The notes beneath the pieces were generated by a model, which searched no databases, was not told where the DNA came from, and saw only the letters and a program-made list of their open reading frames with translations. DNA of 58,768 nt from Chara braunii (lineage: Eukaryota; Plantae; Charophyceae), in contig BFEA01000017.1 of the NCBI GenBank assembly GCA_003427395.1, positions 1,976,342-2,035,109 of the forward strand, given 5' to 3'. Each line of letters begins with the position of its first letter. The first letter of the stretch is position 1. A program made the translations under genes and the position numbers. Below are positions 1,801 to 58,128 of the stretch, piece by piece.

Positions 1801-2011
1801 AACCATCTCTCTGATCCTATCCGCATCCGAACTGGATGGGGGATCCATTTGAGATTTCTTTGAGGTCGTATAATACTTGGGACTGTGGTTCTACTCGACT
1901 TCCAGATCCAACCACTTCACGGCCAAAGCTTTGTTGGCTTTTTTTTTTTTTTTTGTGATTCTGACAGTGGTGCTCCCCGTGTTCCTCGTTCTGCTGAAGT
2001 GCCCTCACTGA

Positions 2012-2464: not shown

Positions 2465-2469
2465 AAAAT

Positions 2470-2832: not shown

Positions 2833-3360
2833 TTTTTTTTTTTTTTTTGAAAAGGCCCTTGCGCAAGGCCTCTACCCTGGTGATGGTAAGAGAACCACCG
2901 GGATTGAGGCTTTGCCTGGCGGGCCGGTCCATCTATTGGTGGGGAGCATCACCTGCTGGAAACCGGGTCCAGCGTCCCTTAAATAACACCTTGACATACA
3001 GTACATCATTTGAAGCGACGCCATTGCTGGAAACCGGGTCCAGCGTCCCATAACAGTAAATTCAGCTAACCTTCCCTGCAGCCGGGGCGGGTAATGGAGG
3101 GAGGCACTGGGGGGCACCAGTGTGATCTCCCTTCCATCCCTAGCCCCTGCCAATCGTCTAGCCTCCGGGCGTCTGTTGTATCCAAAACAACGTATCTAGC
3201 TGCTGAACCTCTACTAAAGGTAGGGGAAAAATAGCAGAAAGCAGAAAAAAAGCAGAAGACAGAAAACAAGAGATAATCCTACTGTTGTATCCAGAGCAAT
3301 GTATCTGTCTGCTGAACCTCTACTGAAGGCAGAAGAACCAGAGCTGATCCTGATGACCCT
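2832..3360 (-). mobile_element. Short non-autonomous LINE derivative (5'UTR fused to 3' tail)
   Basis: Poly(T) at 2832-2848 is a minus-strand poly(A) tail; 2850-2981 is the reverse complement of the 3' module seen at 10489-10612; 3025-3137 is the reverse complement of LINE 5'UTR sequence at 3804-3929. Confidence 0.7.
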
Positions 3361-14592: not shown

Positions 14593-14746
14593 AATACAGA
14601 CCTTAGATGGGAGGGCTGCTCATACCACGCTACTAGGTTCTCCTGGGTCTTAAAAAAAAAAGGGGGTAACATCAGTAGAGTCACAAAAACGAGTTATAAG
14701 TGCACTATGGGGCAGGATACAGTTTGCAATTGCACTTGGGGCCCCC

Positions 14747-16860: not shown

Positions 16861-17308
16861 TTTGCACAAAAATCAGCCAACAGGCCCGTGTACGACCGAA
16901 CACCTCGTGTGCACACGTGTAAGTGCGATCTGATCGGCGCGGTCTACACGTGTCCACACATGGGCGATTCGCGATCACTGAGGAACTTGGCACCCCTAGC
17001 ATCGGGATAAGCGCGAAATTTTCTTTTTTTTTTTGCGAGAGTTTGAGCCGGTAGGAATTTCCGCCCCCATACTCGGAAATTCCCTTGTCGATCGAAGTAC
17101 GATCCGATGCGAGCAGAAGGTTCTCATTACGCCGTAGCTAGTGATCCGCCGGGATGCCAAGATGTCGTACCTCGCGGACCAGGAAGGATTGTGGGATCTA
17201 GAGTACAGAGAATACTGGGAGGGAGAACAACTAAGGCTGAGACATCCAGAATTCCCCTGTCTAACCTAGAACGACCGACTGTGTCCCAGGGACTCCCGCC
17301 ACACCATT

Positions 17309-23653: not shown

Positions 23654-24373
23654 CAGGGTAGCCGGCGTTCGGGACGGGCCGAACACCCAAACCCGAACGC
23701 CCGAATGTTTGGGAACCCCTCTCGACGCGTTCGGACGTTCGGCCGAACGCGAAACCAAAAAACAAAAAAAAAGTTTCCAAAAATTCTGGAAAAACAAATG
23801 TCATGCAGAAGAATAAACTAAACAACATTTGCCTCAACAGTACATCCAAATTCCTTACCAAATTTGAAATAAAAATCAAATATAAAAAATAAATAATATT
23901 TATGAAAATAAAAAAAAATAAAACGATAATGAAATTATTGCGTTGGCGAGCAAGTTTTTGACACCGCAATCTTTGGCGATTTTTTATTTTTTTTTGGCTC
24001 TGTCGAATGCCATGAAATTTTATACATATGTATCTTACATAATCGAGAACCTACGAATAAAGTTTTAAAAAATAATAGTTTTTTTTAGACCCCGAAATAA
24101 AGGGAAAACAAAAAGTGAAAAGAGAAAAAAACAAATTAGTAAGTGGGAAAGCAAGTTCTAACACCACCATCTTTGCCGACTTTTCATTATTGTTTGGCTC
24201 CACGGAATGACTTTAAAATTGAGAGACAGATAGTTTACATAACAGAGAACTCGCAAAAAAACAATTAGAAAAAAAAAAAAACCCTTTGAGTTCGGGCCCC
24301 GTACGGGGACCCGAACGCTCGAATGTTTGGGGGTCAGCTTAGGGGCCTCCGTACATTCGGCCTGGCAACCCTA
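23654..24373. mobile_element. hAT-type MITE
   Basis: TIR CAGGGTAGCCGG ... CCTGGCAACCCTA, subterminal CCGAAC/GTTCGG motifs, inserted in (TA)n. Confidence 0.75.
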
Positions 24374-24417
24374 TATATATATATATATCATCACAAATAT
24401 ATATATATATATATATA

Positions 24418-24625
24418 TCGTCACAAACAGAACTGCCCGGTAAACCGTAGGAAGAGAGAGAGAAGAGGACAACAAACGAGGGGCTGTGACAAACTGTTTC
24501 GTCAGAGTTTCACCGACCCATCAGGAGGCTGAGCCCTCAACAGTCTGAAGAATCCCCTCACTGATTACAATGTAAATGATAATCTACCTTAACCAAAATC
24601 AAAGTAGACTATATATATGTGACGA
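24418..24625 (-). mobile_element. Short hammerhead-carrying element, copy 1
   Basis: Inverted termini TCGTCACA ... TGTGACGA within (TA)n; near-identical to 56428-56582. Confidence 0.8.
24490..24547 (-). ncRNA. Type III hammerhead ribozyme, core-mutated copy
   Basis: Minus strand CAGACUGU U GAGG gcucag CCUC CUGAUGG GUCGG ugaaacu CUGAC GAA ACAGUUUG; A9 is replaced by G. Confidence 0.8.
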
Positions 24626-24829
24626 TATATATATATATATATATGAGAAACTGATGCAGTAACGGGTGGAGAGACATCGAACGATCGACCACTCGCACTG
24701 CCAAAAGATCGTTTAATCAATTCTTTGGCGAACCGTAAAACGATCAACCAATCAATCAATCAACCAAACAATCAATCAATCAACCAATCAATCAATCAAT
24801 CAGTCAACCAGGCAATCAATCAATCAATC

Positions 24830-37454: not shown

Positions 37455-37937
37455 CTACTCCACAACAGCTACATCAAAAGTTATTTGGCATCGTAGTCTC
37501 CTAGTGTCATCTGATGTGAAGGTAATTGGTGGCAGAAACCCTATCGCCAATAGGGATGCATATGCAAGCATAAACACACTGCACTTGTTGAAGTCGCGCT
37601 GCTTTGGAATATCTTTCACTACCCATCGATGGTTGAAGTTTTTTGTGTCAATCTCTTGACCTTGTTCGACCAATCTCGTGTACAAAAATTTTGCGAACCC
37701 CCCTGTCACCTTCTTTGCGAGTTCAACATTTGGTGTCAGCGAATCACAGCACTCAAATTTCATACGCCTCAGGTCTGCTACTATGAGTGTCCAATGCAGG
37801 TCTGCGACTATGAGTATCCAATGTCGGTTGTGTGCGATATGGAAAGGTGCAATAATCAAATCCATATCGCTTATCACAACCTCTATCAACCATTTGTGAA
37901 CCCTATCATACTGAAACTTCATATAACTATCAAATAA
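37455..37937 (-). pseudogene. Ulp1/SENP-like C48 peptidase, C-terminal part
   Basis: DLIIAPFH...HWILIVAD...CDSL...IPKQRDFNKCSVFM provides the His, Asp, Gln and Cys catalytic motifs. Confidence 0.85.
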
Positions 37938-38451
37938 AACCAGAACTGGGATTGTGGGGTGGGACGACCTGGGTTTATTTGCCCAAATTGAACAAGGACC
38001 AGACATAGGAGAGGACAAGTACCGTTACTGGGTCCTGGCCACAGCGCCGACTATGGGCCGGCCGAGAATTAGGACAAGAACCGGAAAGTTCCAGAAATCT
38101 TTTTACCGAGTTCCAGGTTCTGGTAGTCCGCAGTCCGGGTCTGTCGAAAAAAAAGCAGAAGACACGGGTTGGGAAGCGGGATTAGCTGTTAGTAGTATTA
38201 ATAGTGGTTAAACTTTTTGTCTTGTAGCGGATGGGTGTGTGGAGTGGGGGCCGTAGGGCCAGGGAGAGAGGGTAAGGGCCGCACCGATAATAGCATGAGC
38301 GTACACGATATTGGTCACGAGTTTCTCGGCTACAGGCTATGTTTTTTCTTTCGATCGCTAAGTTTTACAACGTTTGTTTTTTCAAGTGTTTGTTGTCCTG
38401 GCATAGTGTGCTACATGCATGGTATGCACGTGTGATGTTGTTTTTCAATGC
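37938..38451 (+). repeat. 5' pseudo-LTR of the Penelope-like element
   Basis: Direct repeat of 51974-52159 plus 53197-53560; lacks TG..CA ends. Confidence 0.9.
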
Positions 38452-38636
38452 TTTACACTGGTCTCGTAACCTGCTTGGAACTATACCTGGAGAGGGTGGC
38501 AGAAGTATTTGCTGAAGTATTCCAAAGTATTCGAAGGAATTGGAGAGTATATAGAGAACGGAGGTTGTCCATGAAGGAGAGGACGAAGGAGAACGAAGAT
38601 TAAGAATAGTGAGAAAGTTTTTTGTTGCTGATAAAG

Positions 38637-39865
38637 ATGAGTCAATCTAGCGGCTCAGGGGGAACAGGTGGAATGGGCGGAAGTAGTGGACAACCACCGA
38701 TACCACAGAGAATTCAACCCATGTTGGGAAAGATGTGTTTCAAATGTGGTGAAGCCGACCACTTTGCAAATGTATGCGAAGAGTGTCAGGACGCCAAGGC
38801 AAGAGGGGTGAAGTTCATTCCGCCGCCGCCGAGACCAAGATTGGGAAGAACAACAACGGTGAGTGGCGAACGACCAAGGAGCCTTTCGGCCGAGAGTTTG
38901 GCAAATCGGTCGGAGACAACGTACACGGATAAATTGATGCGGGAATATTTAACGGAATTGGTCGAAGAATGGGGGGCGAGAAAGGAACAGGAAGCAAGGG
39001 AGCATGAAGAGAGGCAGGCAGAAGAAGCACGTATGGAGAAAGAGAAGAGAAGATTGGAACGTCTTGAGGAAAGGAAGAAATATGAAGATGAGCGGGTTGC
39101 AAGGTTGCTACGTTGAGTTCGTGGAGAATGGGGAAGGGGGGTGCGAGGCAACAGCGAGAAACAAGAGAAAAAGAAAAGAGGAAAAGAAAGAGTCAACGAA
39201 AGAGGAGAGACAGTTGAGGAAGAGAAGGAGAGGTTAATAAAAAAAATCGCGATGCAACCAAACTCGAAAAAAGAGAAAGACAACGAGTTGCTGCTGTTAC
39301 GAAGGCGAGCAGCGAGGATTTACATTCATGACAAATGACGAAGAGACACAGAGAGCAAGATGGATAGCAGTTCGCCGATGACTACACCAAAGAAAGGACA
39401 GAGAGTGGGTCTGATGACGGACACAAGGGGAGGAAGAATCAGATTGGGAACAAAGGCAAAGGAAAAGATAGGGGAGATCCGGGGCCCCGAGGCACTGAGT
39501 CAGGAAGAGCAGCGTCGACCTCAGTGATACTTGCACCAGTTGGCAAGCTGTCATTGAGCATGAAGCACGTTATGCCGGGGAGCGGACCTGGCGATCGGGA
39601 AAGATATGAGGCCGAATGCAGAGACTTGTTTGAAGCCTTGAGCGTAGATGAATTGAAAGAGGTGTGCAAGAGCGACAAGATTAGCTACGCCAACAGAGAT
39701 ATTGTAGTCAAGCAACTGGTAACAACGCGGCTGCTCAAAGCATATGATCCGATTAACGTACCTCTGCCAGATTCACCGAAAGAAACACCGAAGGTGCCGA
39801 GATCTGCAAGGTCAGCATGAATCAAGCAAACAGTGGAGGTCACTGACGAGGAGGTATCCGAATGA
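38637..39865 (+). pseudogene. PLE ORF1: Gag-like CCHC knuckle, charged coiled-coil, SAP/HeH-like C-terminus
   Basis: CFKCGEADHFANVC; E/R/K-rich helix; LSVDELKEVCK...IVVKQL; in-frame stops and a frameshift. Confidence 0.75.
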
Positions 39866-39889
39866 TGTGTCGGGCGCGTGTGGAGATAA

Positions 39890-40571
39890 ATCAACGTACT
39901 TCGAAGCCTAAGATTAAAGATCGGCTGTAATGATGAAGCGTCCGAAAACAGATTGCGAGCGAGAGTGATCGAATTAGTGCTGCGTGGTGAAGTGTCGTGG
40001 TGTGAGAAGCTGTTGGATTACTGGCGAGACGCGTGTTCGAGTGATGTTATAGAATTGACGAGACCAGTGGGATGTGTCTACGCGTTAGTATCTCCATGGT
40101 ACAAACAAACTTATATTGGCATGACGGAGCGGATGTTGAATGCAAGATGGAAAGAGCACGTGGCGTGTGGACAGAAGAAGGGAAGGCGAGAAGAAAGAAT
40201 AAGGAATCTGTATAAATGGATGAAGAAGGTTGGAGTTCAGAACTATGTGGCAATTCCGTTGTATTTTCACAAGGATAGACAGGAGCTGAAAGTGGTGGAG
40301 AGATTGCTGATAAGAACGTGGTCCCCATCATTTAACACGAAAGTAAAAAAACAGAGGACAAAGAGCAGACGAAGACGAGGAAAGAAAGAACAGAGAAGAG
40401 ATCAGGGGAACGAGGGGACTAGGGTGGCCCCGGATAAGAAGACCGGGGAATTGGCGACTTCGAAGATCCTAGCCATGAAAACGGAAGATGGAAGCGAAGC
40501 GACTGTACGATTGGTCCACTTATTTCAGAAGCTGGAAAACGCCGGGAAAGGGAAGGAAGATAGGCTGCTAA
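39890..40571 (+). pseudogene. PLE ORF2 part 1: GIY-YIG endonuclease
   Basis: GCVYALVSPWYKQTYIGMT...RWKEH...ERLLIRTWSPSFN: GIY/YIG pair plus conserved R, H, E and N. Confidence 0.88.
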
Positions 40572-40965
40572 CTGTGTATCTTTTTAACGGAGAACGGGGG
40601 AATTAAACTCCCGTTGAATCCCGTTAAATTAAAAAAAATCTCATTGAATTCACGTTAAACTTGAAAATGGGCCGCTCCCGTGCTTTTCGGAAAAACGGAA
40701 TTGATGCGTGGGATCCGAAACACGTGGCCCTACAAAAAAAAAAAAAAAAAACCTCCTACCCTTGAAGCATCTCCCATACGCCCCCACATCCCCCAACCCC
40801 CAACGCCCCAGTTATGTGTGTGTAGGTGTGCTGTGTGTTCGTGTATGTGTGTATGTGTGTATGTGTGTATGTGTGTATGTGTGTATGTGTGTGCGCCTGA
40901 GAGTGTGGTTGTGCATGAATATGAATGTATGCGTGTATATTTGTGTATTTGTGTATGTGTGTGTT

Positions 40966-41046
<81 letters not shown>

Positions 41047-42351
41047 ATGCATGATTGTTGGCGTGTGTCCATTGTTTCCGTTTTGAGAGATATAGTTTTT
41101 TCCCGTTGAAAACTGAGGGCAGGCGATATGGGTTTGGGTGGGCGATTTGGGTCTGTGTTTTTTTTTTTTTTTTTTCTCTTCTACTGCATCTTCCCATAAA
41201 TACAGTATCCAAGCATTCTGCTGTTTGTTACCAAGTAACGAAATATAGAATGGACTGCCATGCCAAGTTGGCAGGGCTTGCTAAGAAAAGAAAAAAAAAA
41301 AAAAGGTACTTACCTTTGCCATGCATCTGGTAGAACATAGGTAGATACACTGCCAGTAGTTTAGAGCTTGAAATGTCATTTTTTCTGGCCGTGTGTGGGG
41401 CGGCACAACCCTCAGTAGCTTGCTATTCGTTTTTCAGGTTTTTTTCTTTTTCTTTTTTTCCCTCTTGCGATCCAAGAATCTGGGCTCCGTCCAGCGGCCT
41501 AGCTCAGTTGATTAGGCACGCAAGTGGCATTCAGGAGGTTGTGCGTTCAATCCCCGCCTATGGCACTGTCGATAACAACCAACTAAGATAGTAAGTTGGA
41601 TCCTCCCAGTCTGTATCAGTAAGGTCTTCAGCCAACACGGCTGGGAGGCACCTGTTGTCCCTACTATCCTACCTCGATGTGACCAACACTAAGGACCATC
41701 ACCCTTAGGCTACCAGTATTGAGGGCAACTTAGACCACATAGCAGTGACAAGCACCAGGGTTGGGCCAACCTCCCAGCCCTAATAGAAGCAGAGGCGGAC
41801 GAACCATGTCGTACGGGAACTTCGGACGCTAGACTCATGCAATCTGCTACAGAACCAATTTTGTGTGTGTGTGTGTCTTTTTTTCCTTTTTTTATTTGCT
41901 TTTTATGGTTTTGTTTTTTTCAAAAATACACGAAGTTCTAAAAAAACTATATTAAAAAAAAATTGTTGTACATCTTTGACAGATCTACAACCCTATATTT
42001 TTTATTTGTTTTTTTGTTTTTGTCTTAGCCCTTAAAAATCTGTGTGAAACCCAAAAAAAAAACACTCATTTCATTTTAGTTTTTGTTTTTTTCATTGTGT
42101 GTTTATGTTTTTGATTTTTAAAAAATATATTTAAACATAAAAAAATAAAAATAAAAATACAGGGTTGTAGTGCTAAAAAAAAACTACAACCTCAATTTTT
42201 GTATTTTTATTTTTTGGATAATTTTTAGCCCAAGAAAAAAATCATCCCGGACTCAGTTAATTTGCGTCTTGAACGGGAGTTTAACGTGAATTCAACGCCC
42301 GTTGAATTTTTCAACGCAGAACCCCTGTTGAATTCAAAATCGGACACACAG
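40572..42351. mobile_element. Non-autonomous DNA element with CTGTGT termini and 8-bp TSD
   Basis: CTGTGT ... ACACAG; perfect TSD GCTGCTAA (40564-40571, 42352-42359); subterminal CCCGTT/AACGGG and GTTGAAT motifs; removal restores the ORF2 frame. Confidence 0.88.
41482..41860 (+). mobile_element. tRNA-derived SINE
   Basis: A-box TAGCTCAGTTG (41500-41510) and B-box GTTCAATCC (41545-41553); no intact cloverleaf; unique body follows; 3' end approximate. Confidence 0.65.
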
Positions 42352-42359
42352 GCTGCTAA

Positions 42360-42530
42360 GCAACGGTGGGAAGGTGTGGACAAACAATTGGCGAATAGTA
42401 TAGAGACTGTTCGGGGAGAAAAGAGTCTACGTGGGAAAAAGGACCAGACCATTGAGGAAGTGTAAAATGATATTGGAACAAGAAGGATGGGTGAGGGTTC
42501 AAGAAGTGAAGGAGGCATCACCAATAGCGT
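42360..42530 (+). pseudogene. PLE ORF2 part 2
   Basis: In frame with part 1 after excision: SNGGKVWTNNWRIV*RLFGEKRVYVGKRTRPLRKCKMILEQEGWVRVQEVKEASPIA. Confidence 0.8.
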
Positions 42531-45500
42531 TGTCGGCGCGAATACCCTTACAAGGGTATCCGCCCTGTTTTATGCAAGTGGCAGAAAATGAATTTGGTTT
42601 AAAGTTAAGTATACCGCGCTAGGTGCGGCTGTGTCTGTGACTTACGTTGACTGGATGGCTGACTAGAGTAAAGAGTGCGTGGGTGCGCAGGTTTAAGGCG
42701 CGCGTGATTCATCCCCTGATGTTGATTACGAAACCGGCGCGGGCGTCGGTCTGTTTATTTTTATTTTTATCTTTATGTTTTGATTTTTGGGTACTCGTGA
42801 TCAAACTAGGATCTAGGGGATATTTTCTTTCGATGGCTACGCTTGACCGAGTCGAGCGTGTGAGCGGGAGACGACCCCGACGACGGCATCGGCAACGGCG
42901 ACGCAACTTCGACAGGTGAGCGGGGTGTTGTAGGATGGCGCGCAGGGCGATTATGGCATGGTATAAGCGACCGGGCGCGGGCACTGGGAGCCGCGCGGCC
43001 GGTTTGTTGGCCCAAAGCATCGCGCCGCACTGCCTTGTATGGTACTCTGCGGGCGCTGGTTTCAAGCTTGGGCTTAGCCCTATAGGTTACGGCATTGGGT
43101 TGACAACGCGGAAGTCCGGGGATCGAGGCCAGCAGGGCGTCGGCGCAACGACTTCAGTAGAGTGTCGTGGAAGGGACCGATGGGGTTGAGGGCCGCCAGG
43201 GCTATCCCCCTCGGTTTTGTTTTCGGGCGCGCCAGCAGCCCCGCGGTTTTTCCGATACTATTGTTATTTAATTTTATTTTCCCTTTGTGTTTTATTTATC
43301 GTGTCCCGTTCGGGGACGCGAGACGACAATGGGATCACATGAAGTGCATTGTATTCGTGGTGTTGCCTGAGGGGCAATTACAAACTGTCTTCGTGGCTGC
43401 GCCGGAGCCGCGCCCCGTTCTGCCTTGGGGCGCAGTGCCGTGGGGGCGGCTGCTACTCAAAGGCCCATCTCAGTGGGTACACAATGGAACTGTTGAAATA
43501 CAGACCTGTGCTTGAGCCCAAACGATGGAGCTCAATGAGTGGAACCAGTTATTTTGAACTGGCCTGCGCTTGCTTAGGTTCAGAAGGGCCGCGGGGCATT
43601 GCCCCGGTAGAAATCTTTCCGGGCACCGGGTGGCAATCCGCTGTAAGACCGCTGCAGGCTGGGTGTTGGGCGGGGCCAAACAGGCAGGGCCGACCGACGA
43701 ATCTCGAAAGTATAAATCAAGGGGCGGCGCCCGGCCGTCCATCAGTACCTGTGGGAGCCGTGCCGAAGCGCTGCCACAGCGCTTAGTGTAGGAAGGTTGG
43801 CAGTAAAGGGCAGCGCGGGGCATCGGGCAACGAGCATCGATATGGAGTAAGCGGCGCAGCAGGGAAGAACGCGAGAGGTAGGTGGCAGTAGGGCAGACGG
43901 TGGGTGTGGAAGTGGGAGTGAACCCGGACGCGGAAGTGCGTCGGGTACGTACGTGACAGAGGGACGATGGTGGATTGAATGAACCAGGGGGGGGTTCTCG
44001 TCGGGGTGCGTGCAGGGGCATAGAGGGCGACAGTGCAGGAGGAACAGGAGGCAAGCGGGGGGAGTGAACCTGGGCGGCGTTATGCATTGGGTGCGCTCGA
44101 TAGTGGAGCGGTGGACGCCGGGTGCTGAGCCGGTGAGAGAAGGCCGGGGCAGCAGGAGAGGATGGCACAGAGCTGCAGAGTGAGGCAGAGTGGAATGCAG
44201 GCGACGAGGGAGGTGAAGAAAGAAAGAAGCAGAGAAACTCGAATGAACCCGGACGGGTTCCCGCGTCAGGTACGTGCGAAGGAGGGAGGAGAGAAAGTAT
44301 CTATCCCACCCGTTTCTTGATGAAAACGGGTGGGAGAAAGGTCTACTCCAATGTTTTCGTGTAGGGCGAATCTAGATGTGTAGTTAGTTTTAGGAGAGGA
44401 TTAGCGAAAAGAGAGTTAATAAGAAAAAGAGCTGCGCGGAGGTGGCAGAAACGGGCTATGGCAGAAATAGAAGAAAGCGATATTTCGCTCGATTCTTAAC
44501 GAAATCGAGCGAAATAAAGTTGTACACTGTAAGAATCGAGCGAAATAAAGTTGTACACTGTGTTCTTTAGGTGCTGCGAACTAGAATATGATGTTAGTTT
44601 TAGTAGGGGGTCGGTAGATCGGGAGTTAGGAAGGAATAACAGTGCGCAGAGGTGCCCAGAGGAGAGACGGGTAGAAGGGGGGGATGTATTTGGCTATGTA
44701 TCTTTCCATGTTCTAGCGGAAGATTCATTCGTACTTTGTTGCTTAGCCTGACGATGAAAGTAGGGTGAGGCTGGCCAGGCAATAGAGATCTTACTTGTTG
44801 GTCGAGGTGCTCGCGCAGGAGAACGGGGACGATGGGGAAGGGGGTGTTACCTCGTGCTGGTATGAGCGTCGGGGAGGAGTTAGTGAGGTGACGAGGTATT
44901 TAGCCGTTTTTTGTTGTTGTTTTTTGGTAAGTTCATTCTGCAGCTACCCGCCCGAGCAGCCGAAGAAGTTGAAGACAGGGGCTGGGTTGAAGACTTACCC
45001 GCTCAACGGTGCACTGCTCCTCCTGCCGAGGGGAGTGTCACCTCTCTATTTCCTTGCGCAGAAGGCTGAAGAGCAGTGAATACTTCCGTATTTGAACGGA
45101 AGATTCACTTAGTTCCTACTTATGCTACGTTCGAAAGTCTGCGAGAAGGGAGGTAAAGAAGGCTGGAGACTTACCTACTAACCGGGACTCTGTATGTCTC
45201 GTTGATAACTTACCGGCCTGCTGAGTGAGGGGGCGACAGGCAATAAGGTTGAAGCTGCAGGATAACCAATGTGACCAGAGCACGCCTCGCCATTTCTATT
45301 GGAAGTACCGGAGGTCAGGCTCAGGCTGCGAGCGTGAAGGTCCTACCGTGGCTGAAGCATTGCCTAACTGTGTACGACCAAGCTAGCAGGTTGCACGTTA
45401 ACTCTGAATGGCCAACCTGGAAGTAAGGGGGCAACCACGGAGCTTGAAGACTAACTGAGCAGCAGTGCAAGGCTCGTATTACCGATGAGGGTAACGTAAA

Positions 45501-46539
45501 GAATTGTTGGCAAACTGTTATTTGTCTCGATGGTACCGATGGTCGGAGCTAGTGTCGCCGTGCGGTAGCACTCGGACTTGCTGAGTTACTCTGGGATCAC
45601 CTGCGCCTGGACGAGATCGAAACCCGTGTTGGCCAAGGGAGTTGCGGATTGGGCGGCAAAGTTGGAGATTTACCTGTCGGCTGGCGTACCGCTCCTCTCG
45701 TCAGTTGGAAACATCGTTAGGCAACAACGAAGTTATAAGCCTAGCCGCTGACTAATGTGCGGCCTCGTCCGCTGAACGAGCCAGTTGCAAGTGAGTCACG
45801 TCCTGAAGGGTTGCCTGCTGATTGATGAATTGCTCAGCCAGCCGGATGGAGTAGTCAGAGGGGAGTCGTGAGCTTGCGGACTTACTTGTGTAGCCGCAGC
45901 ATTTCGGGTCGCAAATCCTGTAGAGGAGTTTGTGTGTGAAGAGGGGGAGTTATTGCTGCAAATAAGGAGGTCGTCAGGAGGGTATTGACTTTAGATTGAT
46001 CAAGCTTGTTGCATGCGTTTGTTGGCCATCATTGCGGGGCCCTTAGGCGTTTTGAAGGTACCAAGGCCCTCTCCTACGAGACTCAGAGCACCATTCTTGG
46101 ATCTGAGAGTCTCAAATCTATCTCCTTCTGCCCTTTTTTCTCTAAGTCTAGTCTATTGGTGCTGAGAGGAAGGCGGCAGGCGGGATTGCAACCCGTAGGA
46201 CCGCACCAAGACTCTGTGGGGAGTCTACCCACTGATTGCGGGAGCTCTGCCGGGACTCAGGAGGAGTTATGGAGGCAGGGAATTGTCAGATAAACCATTT
46301 CCATTTGTACAACCTACTACCACCCATGTTTTGTTTATCCCCCTGCAGTATGACTGTTGTATGCATGAGGTTGTCCCTGTGGTTTTTGTTTTCTCTTCAA
46401 GACCCAATCAGACTGAATGGAAGGAAAGTGTGAGAGTGAAGCCTAAATTTCTTCTTTATTTTTGTTGAAAGCAGGCAAAGGGATAAACTGGAGGAAGATG
46501 GGAGGAAGGCAGGCTGCATGCGTTTGACCGGGTCAACCA

Positions 46540-47170
46540 AAGCCTGAGCATTGTTTCCATGGTGAATGGCTCAGGGCTGTGTTTATTTGGCTATTTTCTG
46601 AAGGACCAGGCATTGCTTCCATGATGAATGGCCTGTTTGCTCTAGTTAACTCTGGGGGGTTGCCTGATTGAAGGAGTTTGAGTTCTTGTTTATTCTGAGG
46701 GAGGATTCCCGGTCTAAGGCTAAGCATCGTTTCCATGGTGAATGGTTTAGCCTGAAAACCACACACATAAGTTAAACCGAGTATAAAAGGGAAAATACTT
46801 TATATATATATTTGCATGTGAACTGGCAGCTGAGCATTGTTTCCATGGTGAATGGTCCAGCGCTAAGTCATATCATTGAGAAGAGAAAGGGAAAAATACG
46901 AAGTATAAATGGAAAATAGTTTTTGGCAAGCTACACATTATTTCCATGGCGAATGGTTCAGCCCCCTGCCCATATTTGCTTCCTTTTTTTAAAACAAAGT
47001 CAGAGAAATACTAAATTTTGGATATTAAACGGCTCAGGGCGGCTAGGCATTGTTTCTATGGCGAATGGTCTAGTCATATGCTCAAAATAAGAGAGAAGTA
47101 GTTGTGCAACCTGTTCGTGTATATCTTAAAGGCAAGTTGGGCATTGTTTCCATGACGAATGGTCCAGCGC
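46540..47170. repeat. Seven spaced copies of GCATTGTTTCCATGGTGAATGG
   Basis: Copies near 46547, 46610, 46723, 46833, 46935, 47047, 47141. Confidence 0.85.
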
Positions 47171-47369
47171 TATGTCTTATGTAAGTGGGAAATAAGGGTT
47201 CAAGGACTTAAAAGATTCATAAACTATCTATATGGAATGAACTTGGGGCTGGTGAAAGTACCTACCTTTTGTCGTTTGGCTTGCATGCGACTAAGTGAGG
47301 CCACTACTTAGTCTGAGTCTTATATTGATAGGTAGTTGCTTCAGTTGCTCGCTACGCGCTAGAGCTATA

Positions 47370-48030
47370 GGAGTTAGTTTCAATTCCTGCATTTTCTGAG
47401 CTAAGTTTTTTTTACTTAGATCAATTTTCGCATTTTCTGAGATCATTTTTTGTACTTGGCTTTGTATAAAATTTGGGAAGCTACTTTCTCTACAGGAAAC
47501 GCTGCCGAAATTTCTACAAATCCAATGAGTTAGTCAGTTGTTGACTTGCCAAAAGTTCAACTCATCTTTCTTTATATCTGACCTAGTAAAAATATGAAAA
47601 GTCTCATTTTCAAAAGGGAGTGCTGCACAAATTTTTGTTAATTCAGGGAGTTAGACAAAAATTGAACTTTGAGAAGTCGAAGTTATTCTCAAAATTTTGA
47701 TCTTAGCCTTGTATAAATTCTAGAATAACTCTTTTCTAGAGGAAGTGCTGCCGAAATTTCTACAAAATTAAGGAGTTAGTTAAAATTTATCTAAAGTTGA
47801 GCTCGAGCTGTCTTTCGAGTTCATATTTGACTTAGTATAAATCTAGGAAGTCTCCCTTTCTAAAGGGAGTGCTGCCCAAATTTCTGTTATTTCAGGAAGT
47901 TAGACATAATTTTGACTTTCCGGAGTTAGAAATTATTTCTGCTTTCATATCCAGACTTATATAAATTCTGAAAAGGCACATTGCCTACAGGAAGCGCTGC
48001 CGAAATTTTCTTAGTTTAAAGGAGATAGAT
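47370..48030. repeat. About 124-bp degenerate tandem repeat with alternating A/B units
   Basis: GCTGCCGAAATTT-type motif near 47501, 47622, 47747, 47871, 47996. Confidence 0.75.
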
Positions 48031-49800
48031 TATATTTTGACAGGTGGCGATTCTGGCGATCCACCCTGAATAAGGGAGATTTTGCAGTTGGTCTACCTAT
48101 GCTTAGGCACTGGCTTAGAGGTAGACTTAGACTTAGCTTTTAGGGAGATTTTTAGTAAGGATGTGTTATGGAGTTGTATTCTCCATACACTTATGATCTT
48201 AGCTTGGGGATTGGTCTGTCGTGTGTTACAGGTCTTCTTGATCGTTTGATTCAAGATCCGGACGAGATTCAGCTTGATCCCTTGAGGGTCATCTTCTGTT
48301 ATCATTGATAACAGGTCGGTTGCCGATTCGTCGGTTTACGATTCAACTCCAATTCACTCATGCCACTCAACCTAAAGGTTTTAGCCTTATGATTGAACTG
48401 TTTTGTTGTGTTCTCACCCGGACTTTATTTTGAATGGTCATTTAAGGAAAAATACTGAGTATTTTATTTTGAGGAGTTGCACAAGAGTAAGGCTTGTATG
48501 GCTAAAGCGAGGGGTGTGAGTACAGAGAATGGTTGAAGTTGACCCCGTGTAGTGCTTGGTTTGTGTTGGACTTTTGATGTGATTGCAGGTATGTTTGTGG
48601 TTCGGACTCTGGATGTGATTGCGTGCGATTACATACTTATATGACTGAAAGGAGGAACCCCACTGTGACTGTGAGAAGTGATCGTCCTATATAACTAACC
48701 CTTATATATTTATAAGTGCCTTGAGTATTCGAGAGGCCTACTGCCATTGTGTATAAGGGTGAACCGGACTATGGTTTGAGAGAAAAGGAAGACCCTCTGT
48801 TATCCTTTGTTTTCTAGAGTTTTCATGGTTGAAAGTTATCGTCCGTGGCAGCTGTCAAAGTCAAACCCCTTGACTTTTGCCCAGGCCTAGGGAGAACTTA
48901 CCCCTAGGGCCGCAAGAAACGATTGTCACCACAGGTATGAACCTGTGTACCACCCACTGTGCACAGAGTGCAAAAGAGGGTGTGTGGTCTTCAACCGCGC
49001 ATGGCGGTTGTCCAGCGTCGAGAGATTAACCCTCAAGGCGCGTGTCAGCCGACACTTGAATGTCGAATGCGATCCTCGAGATTAACGAGGACCGCATGAG
49101 TATGGGTACTACATAGTACGCCATCGTTGCGACTGCTTGCGCATGTTTGCACTGGTGAGTCAATATGAGTTAGCCCTGCGTCTGCGCGGTTATATACTAA
49201 GTCTCGCGCATGACGCCCATTTGATTTCTGCATCGAAAAGTTATGGTTTGACTACCGAGGGGCTAGGAGCGTTGTCGCGTTGTTTGGGTTGTGTCGTTTC
49301 GTATGCGTATATGTGTTGTTTTGTGTGTATGTGTGTTTGTAAAGTGGAGTGTGCGTGGTGTGTGGGATGCGTCCTAGTCGACCGACGACGAACCGCACTT
49401 GGGACTTCAGCCCCCCATGATGCCGGTTCGTGTGCGGGTCCGATAGAGGCGTATTACCTCGCGTACCCCCTATGCTACAGCGAATGAGAAACACCCTCGG
49501 CTGGTCCACCTCTGCGACTGCAACTGATTAACTCTCGTACTGTGGACTGGTAGCTCAGCGGGGATACGCCCACCGAAGGAAGGTGACAGCTCCCGTAAGG
49601 TGGAGGTAAGTCGTGCCTCGCGTAGGCCCTATCCTGTCGTAGGGGCTCGCGAGAGATATGGCTGGCGCACTCGGCCGGAGCGGCTTGCGGAAGCTCCATC
49701 ATGTATTCACGACGAGGATTGAAACCAACTCCTGCGTGACGCGGCCGGGAGGGTCCCACGCTGCCCTGGTGCGGTGCCGGACCGATGCGCTCGACAACGC

Positions 49801-51878
49801 TGAAATTGAAAGGACAGTTAGTGCAGATGTTCAAATTCAGGAAGAAACAGGGGAAACTAAAGAAACTGTCGATCAACGACTTGGTCAGGTATTACAATGC
49901 AGCGAACATATTTTCAACCAAGAGAAGTCGATCACGGGCTAAGAAGATGGTGAAGGATGTGGTAAAGGAGAAGTTTGGAATACAGATAGGTCGTCGAGTG
50001 GTTACTAAAGTGAGGTATGATGAACGGATTAAGAAGGGGGAAGTAGCAAGACTTGTGGAAAGTAAGATTGGTGGACTACCTCTCAACAATGCCGTGAAGG
50101 AGATGGTAAAGCAACGAACTCGAGTAGTTTGGACAAGAGGGTCAAACATCGGGGAAATCATCCACAATTATCACCGGTATGCGGCGAGTAGGGTTGTGAG
50201 ATACTCTTGCATCGATCCGTTCCTTTAAAAAGAGAAGGGACACATTCATTTCCGACTAGGCACATGGGAGGGATGCCCGGAGATTGCAAAAAACGCTAAG
50301 AACGTTTCGAAGGATTGGGTAGACGAATGTGGAAAGAGAGTGGGGAAGGAGATTATGAGCTCAATCCATGGTATCGATTGGCTTAACATGGATGTGAGCG
50401 TCGCCAAGGTAACCGCGACAGAGTTGAGTCGGTGCATTGATACGTCGAAGAGAATGTAGAGAGGGAATATGAAGGAGGTGATAGATCTGAAGAAGAAATT
50501 GGACGAATTCGTATGCACCCCCCTGAACCGGAATCCAGGTGAGACCCTTGTGATGTGTGTCGAGGTATATGCTGCAGACATAGGCAACACATTCATTGCG
50601 AATGAAGGATACGAGAGAAGGGAGGAAAAGGAAAAGGATATATTGACAAGAATGAGGAAGGAGTATCGAGAGAGAAAGTTCGGTGAGCACGGGTGTTGGA
50701 AGAAGGGAGCCTCAGGAAAACTTGGGCATGCATATGCGCTTCCCAAGCACAAAGATATTACAAAATTCTGGCCCATTTGTCCAACGTTCAGCGAACCATG
50801 GAATAGATTGTGCAAGAAGGTTTCACAAGGGCTAACCGGTCTGCTATTCAACTTACATGAGAGCAGACATTTCAACCTGAAATCGGTGCACCTAATGTCT
50901 GAAAAGTTGCAGAGAATGAACAAAAGCTTGGAGAAAGGATGTGCAAACGTGGGTGTGATGACGAACTCCTACGACATGAAAGAATCTGATATGTTTAGCA
51001 GGTTGCCGCATGAAATCATCTTGAAGGTTGTGGATTGGTGTATCTGGTGGTTCGAGACCAGAGGTTTCTGTGGGATTTTTGTGAAAGTGAGGGGGAAGGG
51101 GGCAAGATTGAGTAAGTGTACAAAGATAGATGGGTATAAGTTTTTGAGTTTTACCTTTGTTCGTGAGTACATGGAGTTTGATTTGGAGAATTGTTATACA
51201 ATAGCATCCGGTATCATCCTAAGACAGACTGTGGGAATTCCAATGGGAAAGTCCTCAAGTCCCCCGCTGACCTGCCTAATATGTGCGAAAGCAGAATGAG
51301 ACTTTCTGCTCATATTGGGTAGCCAAAAAATATTGGTGGCGAGAATAAGATTCGTTAACGATGCTTCCCTCTTTGTAACATATAATAAAAGAAGTGAGAA
51401 ATCGAGAAGAAGGGCGGAGGAGACGGCGCAAGCGTACAAGGCATGTTACGATGCGAACCTGACACTGAAACGTATAGTTTCTGGGGACAAAAAATGAGAA
51501 TTTATGGGATGTCGACTGGAGGTAGGAAACGAAACCCCCTTCCTTGGCTGCTATCAAGTGATAAAATACGAGGCTGATCTGATCGATGGCGGCCCTGGCG
51601 GCGAACTGACATTCGTCACATTGCAAACCTTCAAGGACTTTGGTTCCTAGACTGGAAAGAAAGCGAAGGTAGCAGCCATCACAAGCTGCTTACATCGGAT
51701 ACAACAAAACTCGACGTCAACCCCTCGAATGGTTGGAACAGTGATTCTGTTGCGAATTAAACTTCGACGAAGAAGCTACCCGGATGGGCTGTTCCGGCAG
51801 GCAATCCGGATTTTTGCAAAGGACAAAGAGAGTGTGTGGAAAATGATAGCGAAACTTTTGTGTCCATGTGGAGAATGA
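49801..51878 (+). pseudogene. PLE ORF2 part 3: linker and reverse transcriptase
   Basis: (Y)SC...GHI decayed CxC linker, PLNRNPG, YALPKHKD..KFWPI, SYDMKESDMFSRLPH, RQTVGIPMGKSSSP, RFVND (decayed YxDD), EFMG; one frame with several stops. Confidence 0.88.
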
Positions 51879-51973
51879 GTAGATTAGTGAAGAAGTAGGC
51901 AGAGAGGGAAGTAAAGTGGATAAGTAGGATGAAACTTTTAGTAAGGACGACCTGGGTTGGTTTGCCCGAATCG

Positions 51974-53072
51974 AACCAGGACTGGGATTGCGGAGCGGGA
52001 CAGCCTGGGTTTATTTGCCCAAATTGAACGAGGACGAGACATAGCAGAGGACGAGTACCGTTACTGGGTGTTGGCCATAGCGCAAACTATGGGCCGGGCG
52101 AGAATTGGGACAAGAACCAAAAAGTTTCAGAAAGTTTTTTACTTAGTTCAAGGTTCCGGGACAAACAGAAGGTTAACGGACCCCTCATTTTTCACCCCCA
52201 CTTATAAAAAAAACAAAGGGTCATTTTAACAATACTTCACACGAATTTGTAGAGTGCATCTCCAGGAACCCAACAAACACCAAACTTGGCACATACATGC
52301 TTTGACCAAAAACAAATTAGGGCAAAAAAATATTAAAAAAATATGATCCCCACTGCACTTTTCATGGATGTGAAGGTTACCCTAGAGGTGAAAAGTGGGG
52401 GTACCTGTTAACCATTTGTGGGTTCCGATACTCTGTTGTGAAGTATTGTTAAAATGACCCTTTGTTTTTTTTATAAGTGGGGGTGAAAAATGGGGGGTCC
52501 GTTAACCTTCTGTCCACAAATGGTTAACAGGTACCCCCACTTTTCACCCCTAGGGTAACCTTCACATCCATGAAAAGTGCAGTGGGATCATGTTTTTTTT
52601 TTGTTTTTTTTTTTTTTCCTGTTTTGTTCTTCGTCAAAACATGTATGTGCCAAGTTTGGTGTTTGTTGGGTTCCTGGAGATGCTTGTTTTGGACAGCGGT
52701 GAGAATTTTCACCGCTCCCCAAAACAAGCATCTCCAGGAACCCAACAAACANNNNNNNNNNNNNNNNNNNNNNNNNNNNNNNNNNNNNNNNNNNNNNNNN
52801 NNNNNNNNNNNNNNNNNNNNNNNNNNNNNNNNNNNNNNNNNNNNNNNNNNNNNNNNNNNNNNNNNNNNNNNNNNNNNNNNNNNNNNNNNNNNNNNNNNNN
52901 NNNNNNNNNNNNNNNNNNNNNNNNNNNNNNNNNNNNNNNNNNNNNNNNNNNNNNNNNNNNNNNNNNNNNNNNNNNNNNNNNNNNNNNNNNNNNNNNNNNN
53001 NNNNNNNNNNNNNNNNNNNNNNNNNNNNNNNNNNNNNNNNNNNNNNNNNNNNNNNNNNNNNNNNNNNNNNNN

Positions 53073-53112
<40 letters not shown>

Positions 53113-53560
53113 GATCCCCACTGCACTTTTCAAGGATGTGAAGGTTACCCTAGGGGTGAAACGTGGGGGTACCTGTTAACCATTTGTGGGTTCCGGTAGT
53201 CTGCAGTCCGGGTCTGTCGAAAAAAGAGCAGAAGACACGGGTTGGGAAGCGGGATTAGCATAGATGTTAGTAGTATTAATAGTGGTTAAACATGTTGTCT
53301 TAACTCCCTTTGCACCTCGTGTGCATAGGAGTCGGTAGCAGACGGGTGCATGGAGAGGGGGCGTAGGGCTAGAGAGAGAGGGTAAGGGCCGCACCGATAA
53401 TAGCATGAGCGTACACGATATTGGTTACGAGCTTCTCGGCTACGGGCTATGTTTTTTCTTTCGATCACTAAGTTTTACAACATTTGTTTTTTCAAGCGTT
53501 TGTTGTCCTGCATAGTGTGCTACATGCATGGTATGCACATGTGATGCTGTTTTTCAATGC
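51974..53560 (+). repeat. 3' pseudo-LTR, interrupted
   Basis: Matches 37938-38451 once 52160-53196 is removed. Confidence 0.88.
52160..53188. mobile_element. Composite foldback insertion with CACAAATGGTTAAC ends
   Basis: 52515-53188 is a long palindrome centred near 52704; 52160-52240 is inverted at 52438-52514; the block is flanked by GGTTCCGG (52152-52159, 53189-53196). Confidence 0.75.
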
Positions 53561-54441: not shown

Positions 54442-56427
54442 TATGTATCATGGATGACACTCGTATCTGATATTCTCTAAAATTCCAAGCGGAATGAATT
54501 ATTTCATCACGCGTCTTCCTCAAAATATTTATCCGAGTTGAGTACGAACACTCACACACATACATACACACACACGTTCCATATATACACACACATACAC
54601 ATTTTCTCCTTAGGAACATATGAACCCATATATCACCCTCTGCATATCTCTATACATTCATCTTTTGTCTTTTCGTTTTTTCTCTCGTGGACCATCTTGT
54701 GCATCGACCTCCTTCATCCATATCCTTTTGTCAGGGGTTCGATCCCCTTCACAAGTATGATCTCACCTCCGAGTTCTCCGTGGCATTGCAACCACCAACA
54801 CATCACATTTTTCGATCGATTATTTTCAAAACAAAAAAACAGATAATGATGATAATCCTTTCGAAATGTGAGGGGTAGGGGTTCGATACCCTCCACGAGT
54901 ATGATCTCGCTTCCTATGTGGCATTGCAACCACCAACACATCACCATTTTCGGTTGATTATTTCCACAAAAAAAAAAAGCATAATCCTTTCGATATGTGA
55001 GGGGTAAGGGTTCAATCCCCTCCACAAGTATGATATCGCCTCCTACATGGCATTGCACTCAAATGGACATCAACTTTTCAATCCATTTCACAAAAAAATA
55101 AAACAGATAATCCTTTCGAAATGTGAAGGGTAGCAGTTCAATCCCCTCAAAGAGTATGATCTCGCCTCCTACGTGGCATTGCAACCAGCACCACATCACC
55201 ATTTTCGATCGATTATTTCAACAACAAAAAAAAAACCCTTCCGAAATGTGAGGGGTAGGGATTCAATCCCCTCTATGCGTATGATCTCGCCTCCTACGTG
55301 GCATTGCAACCAAACGGACATCACCTTTTCGATCCATTTTCAAGAAAAAAAAAATCATCGTTTCGAAATATGAGGGGTAGGGGTTCAATCCCCTCCATGA
55401 GTACGATCTCGCCTCCTATATGGCATTGGAATCAAACGGACACCACTTTTTCGATTGATTTTCCAACAAGAAAAAAACAGACAATCCTTTCGAAATGTGA
55501 GGGGTAGGGGTTCAATCCCCTCCACGACTATGATCTTGCCTCCTATGTGGCATTGCACCCAAACAGACATCACCTTTTCGATCGATTTTCCAAAAAAAAA
55601 AAAAAAGATAATCCTTTCAAAATGTGAGGGGTTAGGGTACGATCCCCTCCAGAAGTATGATCTTTCCTCCTACATGGCATTGCACTCAAACAGACATCGG
55701 CTTTTCGATCCATTTTCCAAAAAAAATAAAAAGATAATCCTTTGATTCCTTTCGAAATATAATGGGTAGCGGTTCAATCCCCTCCACGAGTATGATCTCG
55801 CCTCCTACGTGGCATTGCAACCACCAACACATCACATTTTTCGATCGATTATTTCCACAAAAAAAAAACAGATAATCCTTTCAAAACATGAGGGTTAGGG
55901 GTACGATCCTTTCAATGAGTATGATCTTGCCTCTTACGTTGCATTGCAATTAAACGAACATCACCTTTCTAATCGATTTTCCAAAAAACAAAAACAGATA
56001 ATCCTTTCGAAATGTGAGGGGTAGGGGTTTGATCACCTCTACGAGTATGATCTCGCCACCTACGTGACATTGTACTCAAACAGGCATCTGCTTTTCGATT
56101 GATTTTTCAGAAAAAAAAACACAGATAATCCTTTCAAAATGTGAAGGGTAGGGCTTCAATCTATGAAACACCCGCGGACACGTCCACGGGTCCGATGTCG
56201 GATGGCGGACGCAGATTGGGCTGCGTCCGCGGACCCGATTTTACCAGAATTTTCCTGAATAAAATAATAGGTTAAAAAAAAAACCAAAAATATGGGGTTG
56301 TAGGAACTTTTAAGCCCTACAACCCCATATTTTGTTTTTTGGAATCCAACTTTGTTTAGGATTTTGAAAAAAACAAAAACTAAATTCGATTTAAAGAAGA
56401 AAAAAAAAAAATATATATATATATATA

Positions 56428-56582
56428 TCGTCAAATAAAACTGCCCGGTAAACCGTAGGCAGAGAGGGAGAAGAGGACAACAAACGAGGGGCTGTGACAA
56501 ACTGTTTCGTCGGAGTTTCACCGACTCATCAGGAGGCTGAACCCTCAACAGTCTGTAGAATCCCCTCACTGATTACACTGTA
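56428..56582 (-). mobile_element. Short hammerhead-carrying element, copy 2 (cut by N gap)
   Basis: Follows (TA)n; near-identical to 24418-24574. Confidence 0.8.
56498..56555 (-). ncRNA. Type III hammerhead ribozyme, intact core
   Basis: Minus strand CAGACUGU U GAGG guucag CCUC CUGAUGA GUCGG ugaaacu CCGAC GAA ACAGUUUG: stems III (8 bp), I (4 bp), II (5 bp), full CUGAUGA/GAAA core, GUU cleavage triplet. Confidence 0.9.
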
Positions 56583-57483
56583 NNNNNNNNNNNNNNNNNN
56601 NNNNNNNNNNNNNNNNNNNNNNNNNNNNNNNNNNNNNNNNNNNNNNNNNNNNNNNNNNNNNNNNNNNNNNNNNNNNNNNNNNNNNNNNNNNNNNNNNNNN
56701 NNNNNNNNNNNNNNNNNNNNNNNNNNNNNNNNNNNNNNNNNNNNNNNNNNNNNNNNNNNNNNNNNNNNNNNNNNNNNNNNNNNNNNNNNNNNNNNNNNNN
56801 NNNNNNNNNNNNNNNNNNNNNNNNNNNNNNNNNNNNNNNNNNNNNNNNNNNNNNNNNNNNNNNNNNNNNNNNNNNNNNNNNNNNNNNNNNNNNNNNNNNN
56901 NNNNNNNNNNNNNNNNNNNNNNNNNNNNNNNNNNNNNNNNNNNNNNNNNNNNNNNNNNNNNNNNNNNNNNNNNNNNNNNNNNNNNNNNNNNNNNNNNNNN
57001 NNNNNNNNNNNNNNNNNNNNNNNNNNNNNNNNNNNNNNNNNNNNNNNNNNNNNNNNNNNNNNNNNNNNNNNNNNNNNNNNNNNNNNNNNNNNNNNNNNNN
57101 NNNNNNNNNNNNNNNNNNNNNNNNNNNNNNNNNNNNNNNNNNNNNNNNNNNNNNNNNNNNNNNNNNNNNNNNNNNNNNNNNNNNNNNNNNNNNNNNNNNN
57201 NNNNNNNNNNNNNNNNNNNNNNNNNNNNNNNNNNNNNNNNNNNNNNNNNNNNNNNNNNNNNNNCGTGTGTGTGTGTCTGTGTGGGCCTGTTGGGGATGGG
57301 GGGCCGACCCCGCCCCCACTAATCAATCAATCACTCAATCAATCAATCACTCAATCAATCAATCAATCAATCAATCAACCAACGAAAAAAAAAAAAAAAA
57401 ACCCTCGAATGAATCTTCCGCTAGAACATGGGAATATACAATCCTACCTATGTGTGTGTGTGTGTGTGTGTGTGCCTGTGGGG

Positions 57484-57515
<32 letters not shown>

Positions 57516-58128
57516 CGAAAAACAAAAAACAAAAAAACGCGCTGTTACTTCTTTTTTTTTTTTTTCGAAATACCTTCACTCGCCCAACCCCCCCCCAACA
57601 AAAAATAGTTTTTTTCATTTATTTTTGTTTGAGGGGGTGGGGTTGGGGATGGGCCGCCCCATGGCGTTTCCGAAATCCCCAACCCCCCTTCCCTTTGGCT
57701 GCCACGTGGCGTCAAAGCCGCGCGTCCGCGGGGTCGGCGGACTCGCCGCGTCCGCGGAATCGACCGCACTTGGCCGCCGCCGAGGGAAATTCCTAGGCTT
57801 TTATCCCCTCCACGAGTATGATCTCGCCTCCTACGTAGCATTGCAACCACCACCACATCACCTTTTTCGATCGATTATTTCAAAAAAAAAAAACTGATAT
57901 TCCTTTCGAAATGTGAGGGTTAGAGGTTCGATCCCCCCGAAGACTATGATCTCGCCTCCTACGTTGCATTGCAACCACCAACACATCACCTTTTTCGATC
58001 GATTATTTTCAAAAAAAAAAAAAAAAGATAATCCTTTCGAAATGTGAGCGGTAGCGGTTCGAACCCCTCGACAAGTATTATCTCGCCTTCTACGTGGCAT
58101 TGCAACCACCAACAAATCACCTTTTCAG

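Follow-up and report, generated by a model that had tools for sequence, protein, structure and literature searches.

A hammerhead-like sequence close to one end of the window (the whole 58,768-nt stretch of Chara braunii DNA analysed here) raises the question of what kind of repeat carries it and how that repeat multiplies. The original prediction was of an intact type III hammerhead in a short, microsatellite-inserted element, a candidate member of a retrozyme-like family.

The hammerhead motif and the element that carries it

On direct reading, a complete type III hammerhead lies at 56499..56554 on the minus strand, within the element copy designated copy B (Table 1), and the stems, cleavage triplet, core, loops and stem III extension are all present as first described. 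Stem III is formed by CAGACUGU/ACAGUUUG, with a GAGGGG/CCCCUC extension beyond it; GUU is the cleavage triplet, stem I (GAGG/CCUC) closes with a 6-nt loop, and the core CUGAUGA is followed by stem II (GUCGG/CCGAC, 7-nt loop) and GAAA. Cleavage is predicted between U56547 and G56546 of the minus strand. A covariance-model search, the check proposed for this motif, returned a match to the full RF00008 (Hammerhead_3) model (positions 1-54) at 45.8 bits (E = 2.5e-9 for the local stretch; E = 7.1e-7 for the whole window). Hammerhead_3 was the best member of the hammerhead clan for the site, with helix III open and helices I and II closed by loops. The score is 2.7 bits below the gathering threshold of 48.5 bits, which is why an Rfam scan of the window at that threshold gave zero matches. 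Stem II with loop 2, and loop 1, are near the RF00008 consensus, which derives mostly from plant sequences.

The minimum-free-energy fold of 56565-56490 (76 nt) is a three-way junction with an energy ordinary for its composition (z = -0.95 versus shuffles). A 29-nt core pattern allowing up to 3 mismatches matched twice in the window against 0.00 expected, and a relaxed Rfam search combined with a regular-expression search found no hammerhead cores in the window other than those of copies A and B. The hammerhead of copy A reached 34.9 bits with RF00008; its core reads CUGAUGG and, judged from these letters, it is probably inactive. Within the element the hammerhead was the sole small-RNA match in Rfam, the hits to mir-702, fstAT, ylbH and ZNFX1-AS1 (E = 3-9) being judged chance.

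A non-coding element of ~210 bp, present twice in (TA)n, had been proposed around the motif. Two copies are indeed present and both abut (TA)n, while the length comes to about 195 nt once TA is left out. Copies A and B are 91-94% identical (91% by alignment of 24395-24574). On the sense strand, copy A consists of a 5' hairpin, the ribozyme with its extended stem III, a CT-rich spacer and a tail ending ..GGGCAGTTCTGTTTGTGACGA, after which (TA)n begins; the hammerhead lies some 65 nt in from the unit's 5' end. The last 40-60 nt of the element end ..CCTACGGTTTACCGGGCAGTTCTGTTTGTGACGA, and its fixed 3' end can be written ..GGGCAGTTCTGTTTG(TG)AC(GA), followed by (TA)n. On the far side of the assembly gap that interrupts copy B lies microsatellite-rich DNA unrelated to the element.

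Table 1 Positions of the element copies, their surroundings and the Penelope-like element in the window
Feature	Position	Strand	Description
Copy A	24418..24609	-	sole complete unit seen, ~195 nt; 3' tail ends ..GTTTGTGACGA
Copy A hammerhead	24491..24546	-	G for A at 24518; stem II G-U pair at 24504
Copy B	56428..56582	-	3' 155 nt of element, ending ..TTTGACGA; 5' part enters assembly gap
(TA)n tract	56411..56427	.	directly 3' of copy B
Assembly gap, 681 N	56583..57263	.	conceals 5' ~40 nt of copy B and upstream sequence
(TA)n tracts 3' of copy A	24372-24388, 24397-24418	.	sequence reading
(TA)n tract 5' of copy A	24625..24644	.	sequence reading
Inverted 8-nt stub of element 3' end, TGTGACGA	24618..24625	+	inside (TA)n 5' of copy A
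10-nt stub of a further 3' end, TTTGTGATGA	24388..24397	-	between two (TA)n tracts 3' of copy A
Chlamys-type Penelope-like element	38200-53560	+	domain and repeat analysis
Its gag-like zf-CCHC ORF	38613-39113	+
Its N-terminal GIY-YIG domain	39890-40603	+
Its RT	49740-51296	+
Its pseudo-LTR	about 38200-38500, repeated about 53200-53560	+

The element contains no long ORF (ORF check). A SINE would have a Pol III head of tRNA, 5S or 7SL origin, and ARAGORN found no tRNA-like sequence in the element. A primer-binding-site (PBS) pattern with up to 2 mismatches gave 4 matches, a chance-level count, zero of them near the elements. Direct repeats are absent around copies A and B, and each unit has one ribozyme and no LTR pair. 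An architecture unlike that of Gypsy-type plant retrozymes had been anticipated, and the lack of an LTR pair, a PBS and an ORF agrees with it. The proposed TCG..CGA ends fared differently: they are no terminal inverted repeats of the element. Copy A does possess 27 nt of perfectly complementary arms when its TA repeats are included, and Tc1/mariner-type elements duplicate TA, as would suit a Stowaway-like miniature inverted-repeat DNA transposon with a TA target duplication and CGTCACA/TGTGACG termini. The unique part of these arms is only 7 nt, however, and the 5' 'inverted terminus' of copy A is best read, on its sequence, as a stub in which 8 nt of the element's own 3' end stand inverted. 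Stubs and inverted copies like those of copy A recur in two other Chara sequences (L001 and L003), and the 10-nt stub 3' of copy A reads as an extremely 5'-truncated insertion.

A large family with truncated 5' ends in (TA)n

Reads and contigs from four Chara braunii runs, among them X1 (DNA) and X21 and X22 (RNA), were mapped onto copy A. In X1, 10,624 contigs match copy A, and in the sampled DNA there is about 1 copy per 18 kb, making the family far larger than the two copies of the window. The genome of Chara braunii is close to 2 Gb in size, and a rough extrapolation from 1 per 18 kb suggests a family copy number near 10^5. Contigs of GCA_003427395.1 hold copies of the element at up to 98% identity. 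A scan of public metagenome contigs with a 19-mer from the tail gave one match (L003; BFBZ01009962.1), with two copies 98-99% identical, and a scan with the ribozyme pattern gave 0 matches in public metagenome contigs. A scan of viral contigs also gave 0 matches. A match in a bacterial coding region from the genome-contig scan was set aside as a chance 19-mer, and a protein search with the open sense frame of the element returned no candidate loci. Three soil and rice-paddy metagenome or metatranscriptome runs (X7, X16 and X17) contained about 1/4 or less of the sampled words of 56200-56582, which could reflect charophyte DNA or RNA in the samples.

Over 24459-24491, in the 3' part of the element, the summed word depth of X1 is 3.4-3.7 million; from 24514 it is only 1.1-1.5 million, and as far as 24590 it remains close to 1 million. 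This fall at 24514 followed by a nearly flat stretch constitutes a 5'-truncation step and a plateau. Roughly 60% of the X1 mass is truncated inside or just 3' of the ribozyme and the remainder extends at least to the 5' end of copy A. Loose ends of X1 contigs at 24510, 24521, 24530 and 24537 continue as ATATAT, and the truncated copies therefore abut (TA)n.

Direct reading of about 200 kb of Chara DNA free of Ns (the window and the further sequences L001-L009) yielded eleven copies. Nine of these are 5'-truncated, at varied points and with TA directly upstream. The 3' end is common to all but one, a 3'-shortened inverted copy in L003, and every copy has TA-rich DNA on its 3' side (11/11; degenerate in L008). 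Conversely, 8 of 19 sampled (TA)>=6 tracts touch a copy. Inverted pairs, both tail-to-tail and head-to-head, are found at L001 21403-21713 and L003 255-414, and end stubs of 8-11 nt occur in both orientations among the sampled Chara DNA. Taken together, the shared 3' end, the varied 5' truncation, the inverted pairs and the stubs are the signature of target-primed reverse transcription and not of a DNA transposon; the same pattern of truncation and inverted copies has been described for Penelope-like elements (PMC8557442). The reading favoured here, with a probability of about 0.7, is that the motif is part of an abundant ~195-nt non-coding, non-autonomous retroelement whose RNA is copied into (TA)n by target-primed reverse transcription. 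At the level of sequence, the copies read in Chara DNA support the earlier proposal of a non-coding, non-autonomous, self-cleaving-type family tied to (TA)n. Against the miniature transposon, truncation is mostly one-sided: the 3' end is kept by all but one copy and the 5' end is missing in 9 of 11, the X1 depth gradient agrees with this asymmetry, and isolated 3'-end stubs of 8-11 nt stand in both orientations; we regard a DNA transposon as very improbable.

In the favoured scheme of target-primed copying, a reverse transcriptase/endonuclease supplied in trans by a Penelope-like element or a LINE would nick (TA)n and prime on the 3' end of the RNA, and reverse transcription would often halt within the structured ribozyme. 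The hammerhead would cut sense transcripts between U74 and G75, and in this way the element RNA would lose any upstream sequence from the host or a neighbouring copy, as ribozymes trim R2 and Penelope-like transcripts; where two sense copies are stacked in one (TA)n tract, cleavage could release unit-length RNA. The 5' processing of R2 by its ribozyme (Eickbush and Eickbush 2010, as cited in PMC5680766) offers a functional analogue, in that a self-cleaving-type ribozyme near the 5' end of the element would likewise free the RNA from an upstream co-transcript, although the R2 ribozyme is HDV-like and R2 itself is an autonomous element with 28S rDNA as its target. No autonomous partner was found among the Penelope-like elements inspected (window, L007 and L009). 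The 5' boundary of the unit rests on copy A and the depth plateau, since a single complete unit was read. Some of the (TA)n could be a product of the element and not a target that was there before it, and with 8/19 sampled tracts touching a copy the family may account for a large share of the TA microsatellites of the genome.

Variation within the family bears on the state of the ribozyme. At 24518, where copy A departs from the core, the base of the intact CUGAUGA makes up 781,755 of 787,066 in X1 depth (about 99%). At six sites nearly all reads are unlike copy A, and copy B has the family majority at five of them, among these the base that restores CUGAUGA; 24548 is the exception, with C as the family majority and a minority T in copy B. 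The cleavage-site base in the family DNA is U with some C and A and no G, that is, the allowed H, and a C to U polymorphism in stem III keeps a G-U wobble pair. Polymorphism at 19-45% was found at three sites in the 5' part of the element and one in the 3' part. An alignment of four hammerhead sequences has 95.6% of its cells paired and shows 2 compensatory pairs, a covariation that is not significant with so few sequences (62/500 shuffles). With its thousands of naturally occurring variants of a single ribozyme, the family lends itself to testing.

A related type III hammerhead lies at L009 17047-17102 (+), where it scores 46.0 bits, is ~85% identical to that of the window and has the triplet GUC; its stem III differs by one compensatory change (C-G to U-A) and one G-U to G-C. 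Its host is a long repeat-rich non-coding region with flanks unrelated to the (TA)n element, and the ribozyme thus behaves as a module present in different kinds of repeat in the Chara genome. The same non-coding region has ~110-nt tandem-like repeats at 16558-16881.

Transcripts, cleavage and the retrozyme alternatives

The RNA runs X21 and X22 are raw oligo-dT RNA-seq, a selection that would lose circles. In the two runs, 5,147 and 11,482 reads fall on the element, with a 4:1 strand bias over its 3' part. Transcripts contain the element, and, on the assumption of standard stranded libraries, the major RNA strand is the one with the ribozyme. Relative to DNA depth, the major strand in X21 falls from about 900-1,300 per million on the 3' side of the cleavage site to ~100 upstream (a ~10-fold drop), and in X22 from roughly 2,000-3,000 to 400 (a 5- to 7-fold drop), compared with a drop of only 2- to 4-fold across the cleavage region on the minor strand. 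The drop is compatible with loss of the upstream piece after self-cleavage. Much of it, however, comes from reads passing from truncated copies into their flanks (loose ends at 24510, 24521, 24530 and 24532), and there is no pile-up of X21 or X22 read ends at the predicted cleavage site, so that cleavage in vivo remains putative. RNA variants at the cleavage base were considered as a sign of selection against cleavage, a reading rejected since they are strand-specific and from diverged copies; they reflect locus-specific expression. Roughly one third of the DNA depth extends upstream past the cleavage site, so many templates had not been cleaved.

The name retrozyme implies a unit excised and circularised between two ribozymes. 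Pairs of intact hammerheads in tandem, a check raised together with covariation in the original prediction, number 0 among the 11 read copies, of which copy B adjoins the gap. The name is thus not earned, because none of the copies is in tandem with a second intact ribozyme and circularity is hypothetical here. Two versions of such a cycle were weighed. In a true retrozyme, tandem sense transcripts would be cut at two hammerheads and the ~200-nt unit circularised as the template for new copies, a course of events that we consider unlikely. In a streptophyte-algal non-LTR retrozyme, equally doubtful in our judgement, the unit, bounded by its own (UA)n, would be cut out of stacked sense copies by the plant-like type III hammerhead and ligated, and the circle reverse-transcribed in trans into (TA)n, seeding much of the TA microsatellite. 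In favour of circular templates, a (UA)n tract in the circle could pair with a nicked (TA)n target, the full unit has TA on both sides, and stacking in one (TA)n tract makes sense-sense pairs likely. A type III motif with a stable stem III should be able to act as a monomer, stem II with loop 2 and loop 1 approach a consensus that is largely plant-derived, and the third of DNA depth upstream of the cleavage site is what religated templates would be expected to give. Against them stand the lack of head-to-tail pairs with two intact ribozymes (0/11 read copies) and the fold of the whole unit, which is neither rod-like nor unusually stable (z = -0.56). There is also no dominant back-joint in DNA or RNA, in a search that is blind at the unit boundaries, which were masked as repeats.

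Plant LTR retrozymes are 600-1,500 nt long, with a hammerhead in each of two LTRs, a tRNA-Met PBS, a PPT and a 4-bp duplication (PMC4918200, PMC5680766). Like them, the Chara element is non-coding and non-autonomous, is transcribed, belongs to the streptophyte lineage and has a type III hammerhead with loops like the plant consensus. Unlike them, it is ~195 nt long with one ribozyme and has no LTR pair, tRNA-Met PBS or 4-bp duplication, and in place of Gypsy-type integration its insertion would be target-primed into (TA)n. The metazoan non-LTR retrozymes have type I hammerheads, are defined by tandem arrays and have been proposed to move in trans with the machinery of Penelope-like elements or LINEs (PMC7229834; preprint 10.64898/2026.07.22.740005). 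With these (170-400 nt) the element shares its short length, non-coding nature, hammerhead, lack of LTRs and very high copy number, whereas its ribozyme is of type III and its read copies are dispersed, or stacked and truncated, often inverted, in (TA)n.

Penelope-like elements and the place of the family among known systems

Hammerheads of Penelope-like elements reside in pseudo-LTRs, including those of Chlamys-2_cBra and PLE-X of C. braunii (PMC4209133, PMC8557442), and hammerhead-bearing retroelements of this alga are thus already published (PMC8557442). The element resembles Penelope-like elements in its 5' truncation, adjacent inverted truncated copies, preference for microsatellites, non-coding hammerhead and host genome. 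The published Penelope-like hammerheads differ in being of type I, often minimal and dimeric (PMC4209133). Reported targets are (CA)n and (C)n for Chlamys and (TA)n for animal Naiads (PMC8557442). Craig et al. described three Chlamys kinds in C. braunii, two of them with canonical hammerheads and some of very high copy number, and a gag-bearing type with a 3' hammerhead (PMC8557442); theirs is the only literature link found between hammerheads and C. braunii. The present ~195-nt hammerhead family was not found in the accessible literature, a comparison that leaves Repbase outside.

These likenesses raise the alternative that an autonomous Penelope-like (Chlamys) element contributes the repeat as its non-coding 3' tail or pseudo-LTR, the short copies being extreme 5' truncations. 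The family shows hallmarks of such elements, namely copies heavily truncated at the 5' end, truncated copies standing inverted beside others, insertion at a microsatellite and possession of a hammerhead, and the C. braunii Chlamys types combine canonical hammerheads with very high copy numbers (Craig et al., PMC8557442). The window itself contains a Chlamys-type element (Table 1) in which about 9 kb of insertions separate the endonuclease from the RT; a search with its RT piece located relatives in GCA_003427395.1. Regular-expression and relaxed Rfam searches found no hammerhead in this element, as assembled, or in its pseudo-LTRs, and local alignments of the repeat with the window pseudo-LTR/UTR stayed within the shuffle range. 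One score just above the shuffles was rejected as a 15-nt match, and a shared 13-mer (CGTTTGTTGTCCT) was not significant.

Other Chara elements do have hammerhead-core motifs. The coding element at L009 8641-14610 is flanked by 728-bp pseudo-LTRs, 97.5% identical, with such a motif in each; the pseudo-LTR motifs of the L007 Penelope-like element are at 9617 and 14885, and a similar single motif, not tied to an element, occurs at L002 14621-14590 (-). Those of L007 and L009 are laid out as CCCC-CUGAUGAG-stem-CGAAAC-..GUC-GGGG, and the L009 pseudo-LTR motifs reach Rfam scores of 16-17 bits only; by inspection, the L007 and L009 motifs look like the minimal type I ribozymes of animal Penelope-like elements (PMC4209133). 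The L007 and L009 elements have no sequence in common with the repeat and are not inserted in (TA)n.

Penelope-like elements with readable ends thus have either no hammerhead (window) or a different core motif (L007, L009), and the 3' region of the one in L001 enters an assembly gap. Similarity to the repeat was seen in neither the window element nor those of L001-L009, a sample of few C. braunii families. Published Penelope-like hammerheads are of type I (PMC4209133) and that of the repeat is of type III. For an extreme truncation product, moreover, DNA depth should go on declining in the 5' direction, and it remains level between the ribozyme and the 5' limit of copy A, where the copy ends in (TA)n. 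Descent of the repeat as the tail of an autonomous element appears quite unlikely on this evidence, and a separate, target-primed retroelement remains the preferred reading.

The Chara family unites a plant-like type III hammerhead with a non-LTR, target-primed signature and a strict (TA)n association. The published groups fall on either side of this combination: land-plant retrozymes have type III ribozymes in LTRs and are moved by Gypsy elements, and the animal retrozymes and Penelope-like elements have type I ribozymes, no LTRs, and tandem arrays or pseudo-LTRs. An origin of plant retrozymes and viroid-like RNAs from Penelope-like elements has been proposed (PMC5680766). The family bears on that proposal, as it would put a type III ribozyme in streptophytes before or outside an LTR context. 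Were the doubtful non-LTR retrozyme version true, the family would be the missing link that joins hammerhead repeats of the Penelope-like or non-LTR sort to the LTR retrozymes (type III) and viroid-like RNAs of land plants.

Several other features were noted around the Penelope-like elements. Some 170 nt after the downstream pseudo-LTR motif of L007 lies the 5' half of a U6 snRNA (15080-15134, +; model 1-56, 39 bits), which may be a template-switch chimera; a full U6 (81.5 bits) is present at L001 581-685 (+). In the window, 52164-52751 forms long near-perfect hairpins whose plant microRNA-precursor matches (61-90 bits against gathering scores of 160-211) are spurious and which resemble MITE inverted repeats inserted into the Penelope-like element's 3' region. 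Adjoining the 5' end of that element is an ORF with an Ulp1-type Peptidase_C48 (37455-38018, minus strand; E = 2.3e-12) that probably belongs to another transposon. A repeat starting with (CAAT)n and then CAACGAAAAAAA occurs in the window at 57320-57700 and 24740-24800 and in L009 at 14657-15153, with about 80% identity between window and L009, and has the look of a further dispersed family, one end of which is a microsatellite.
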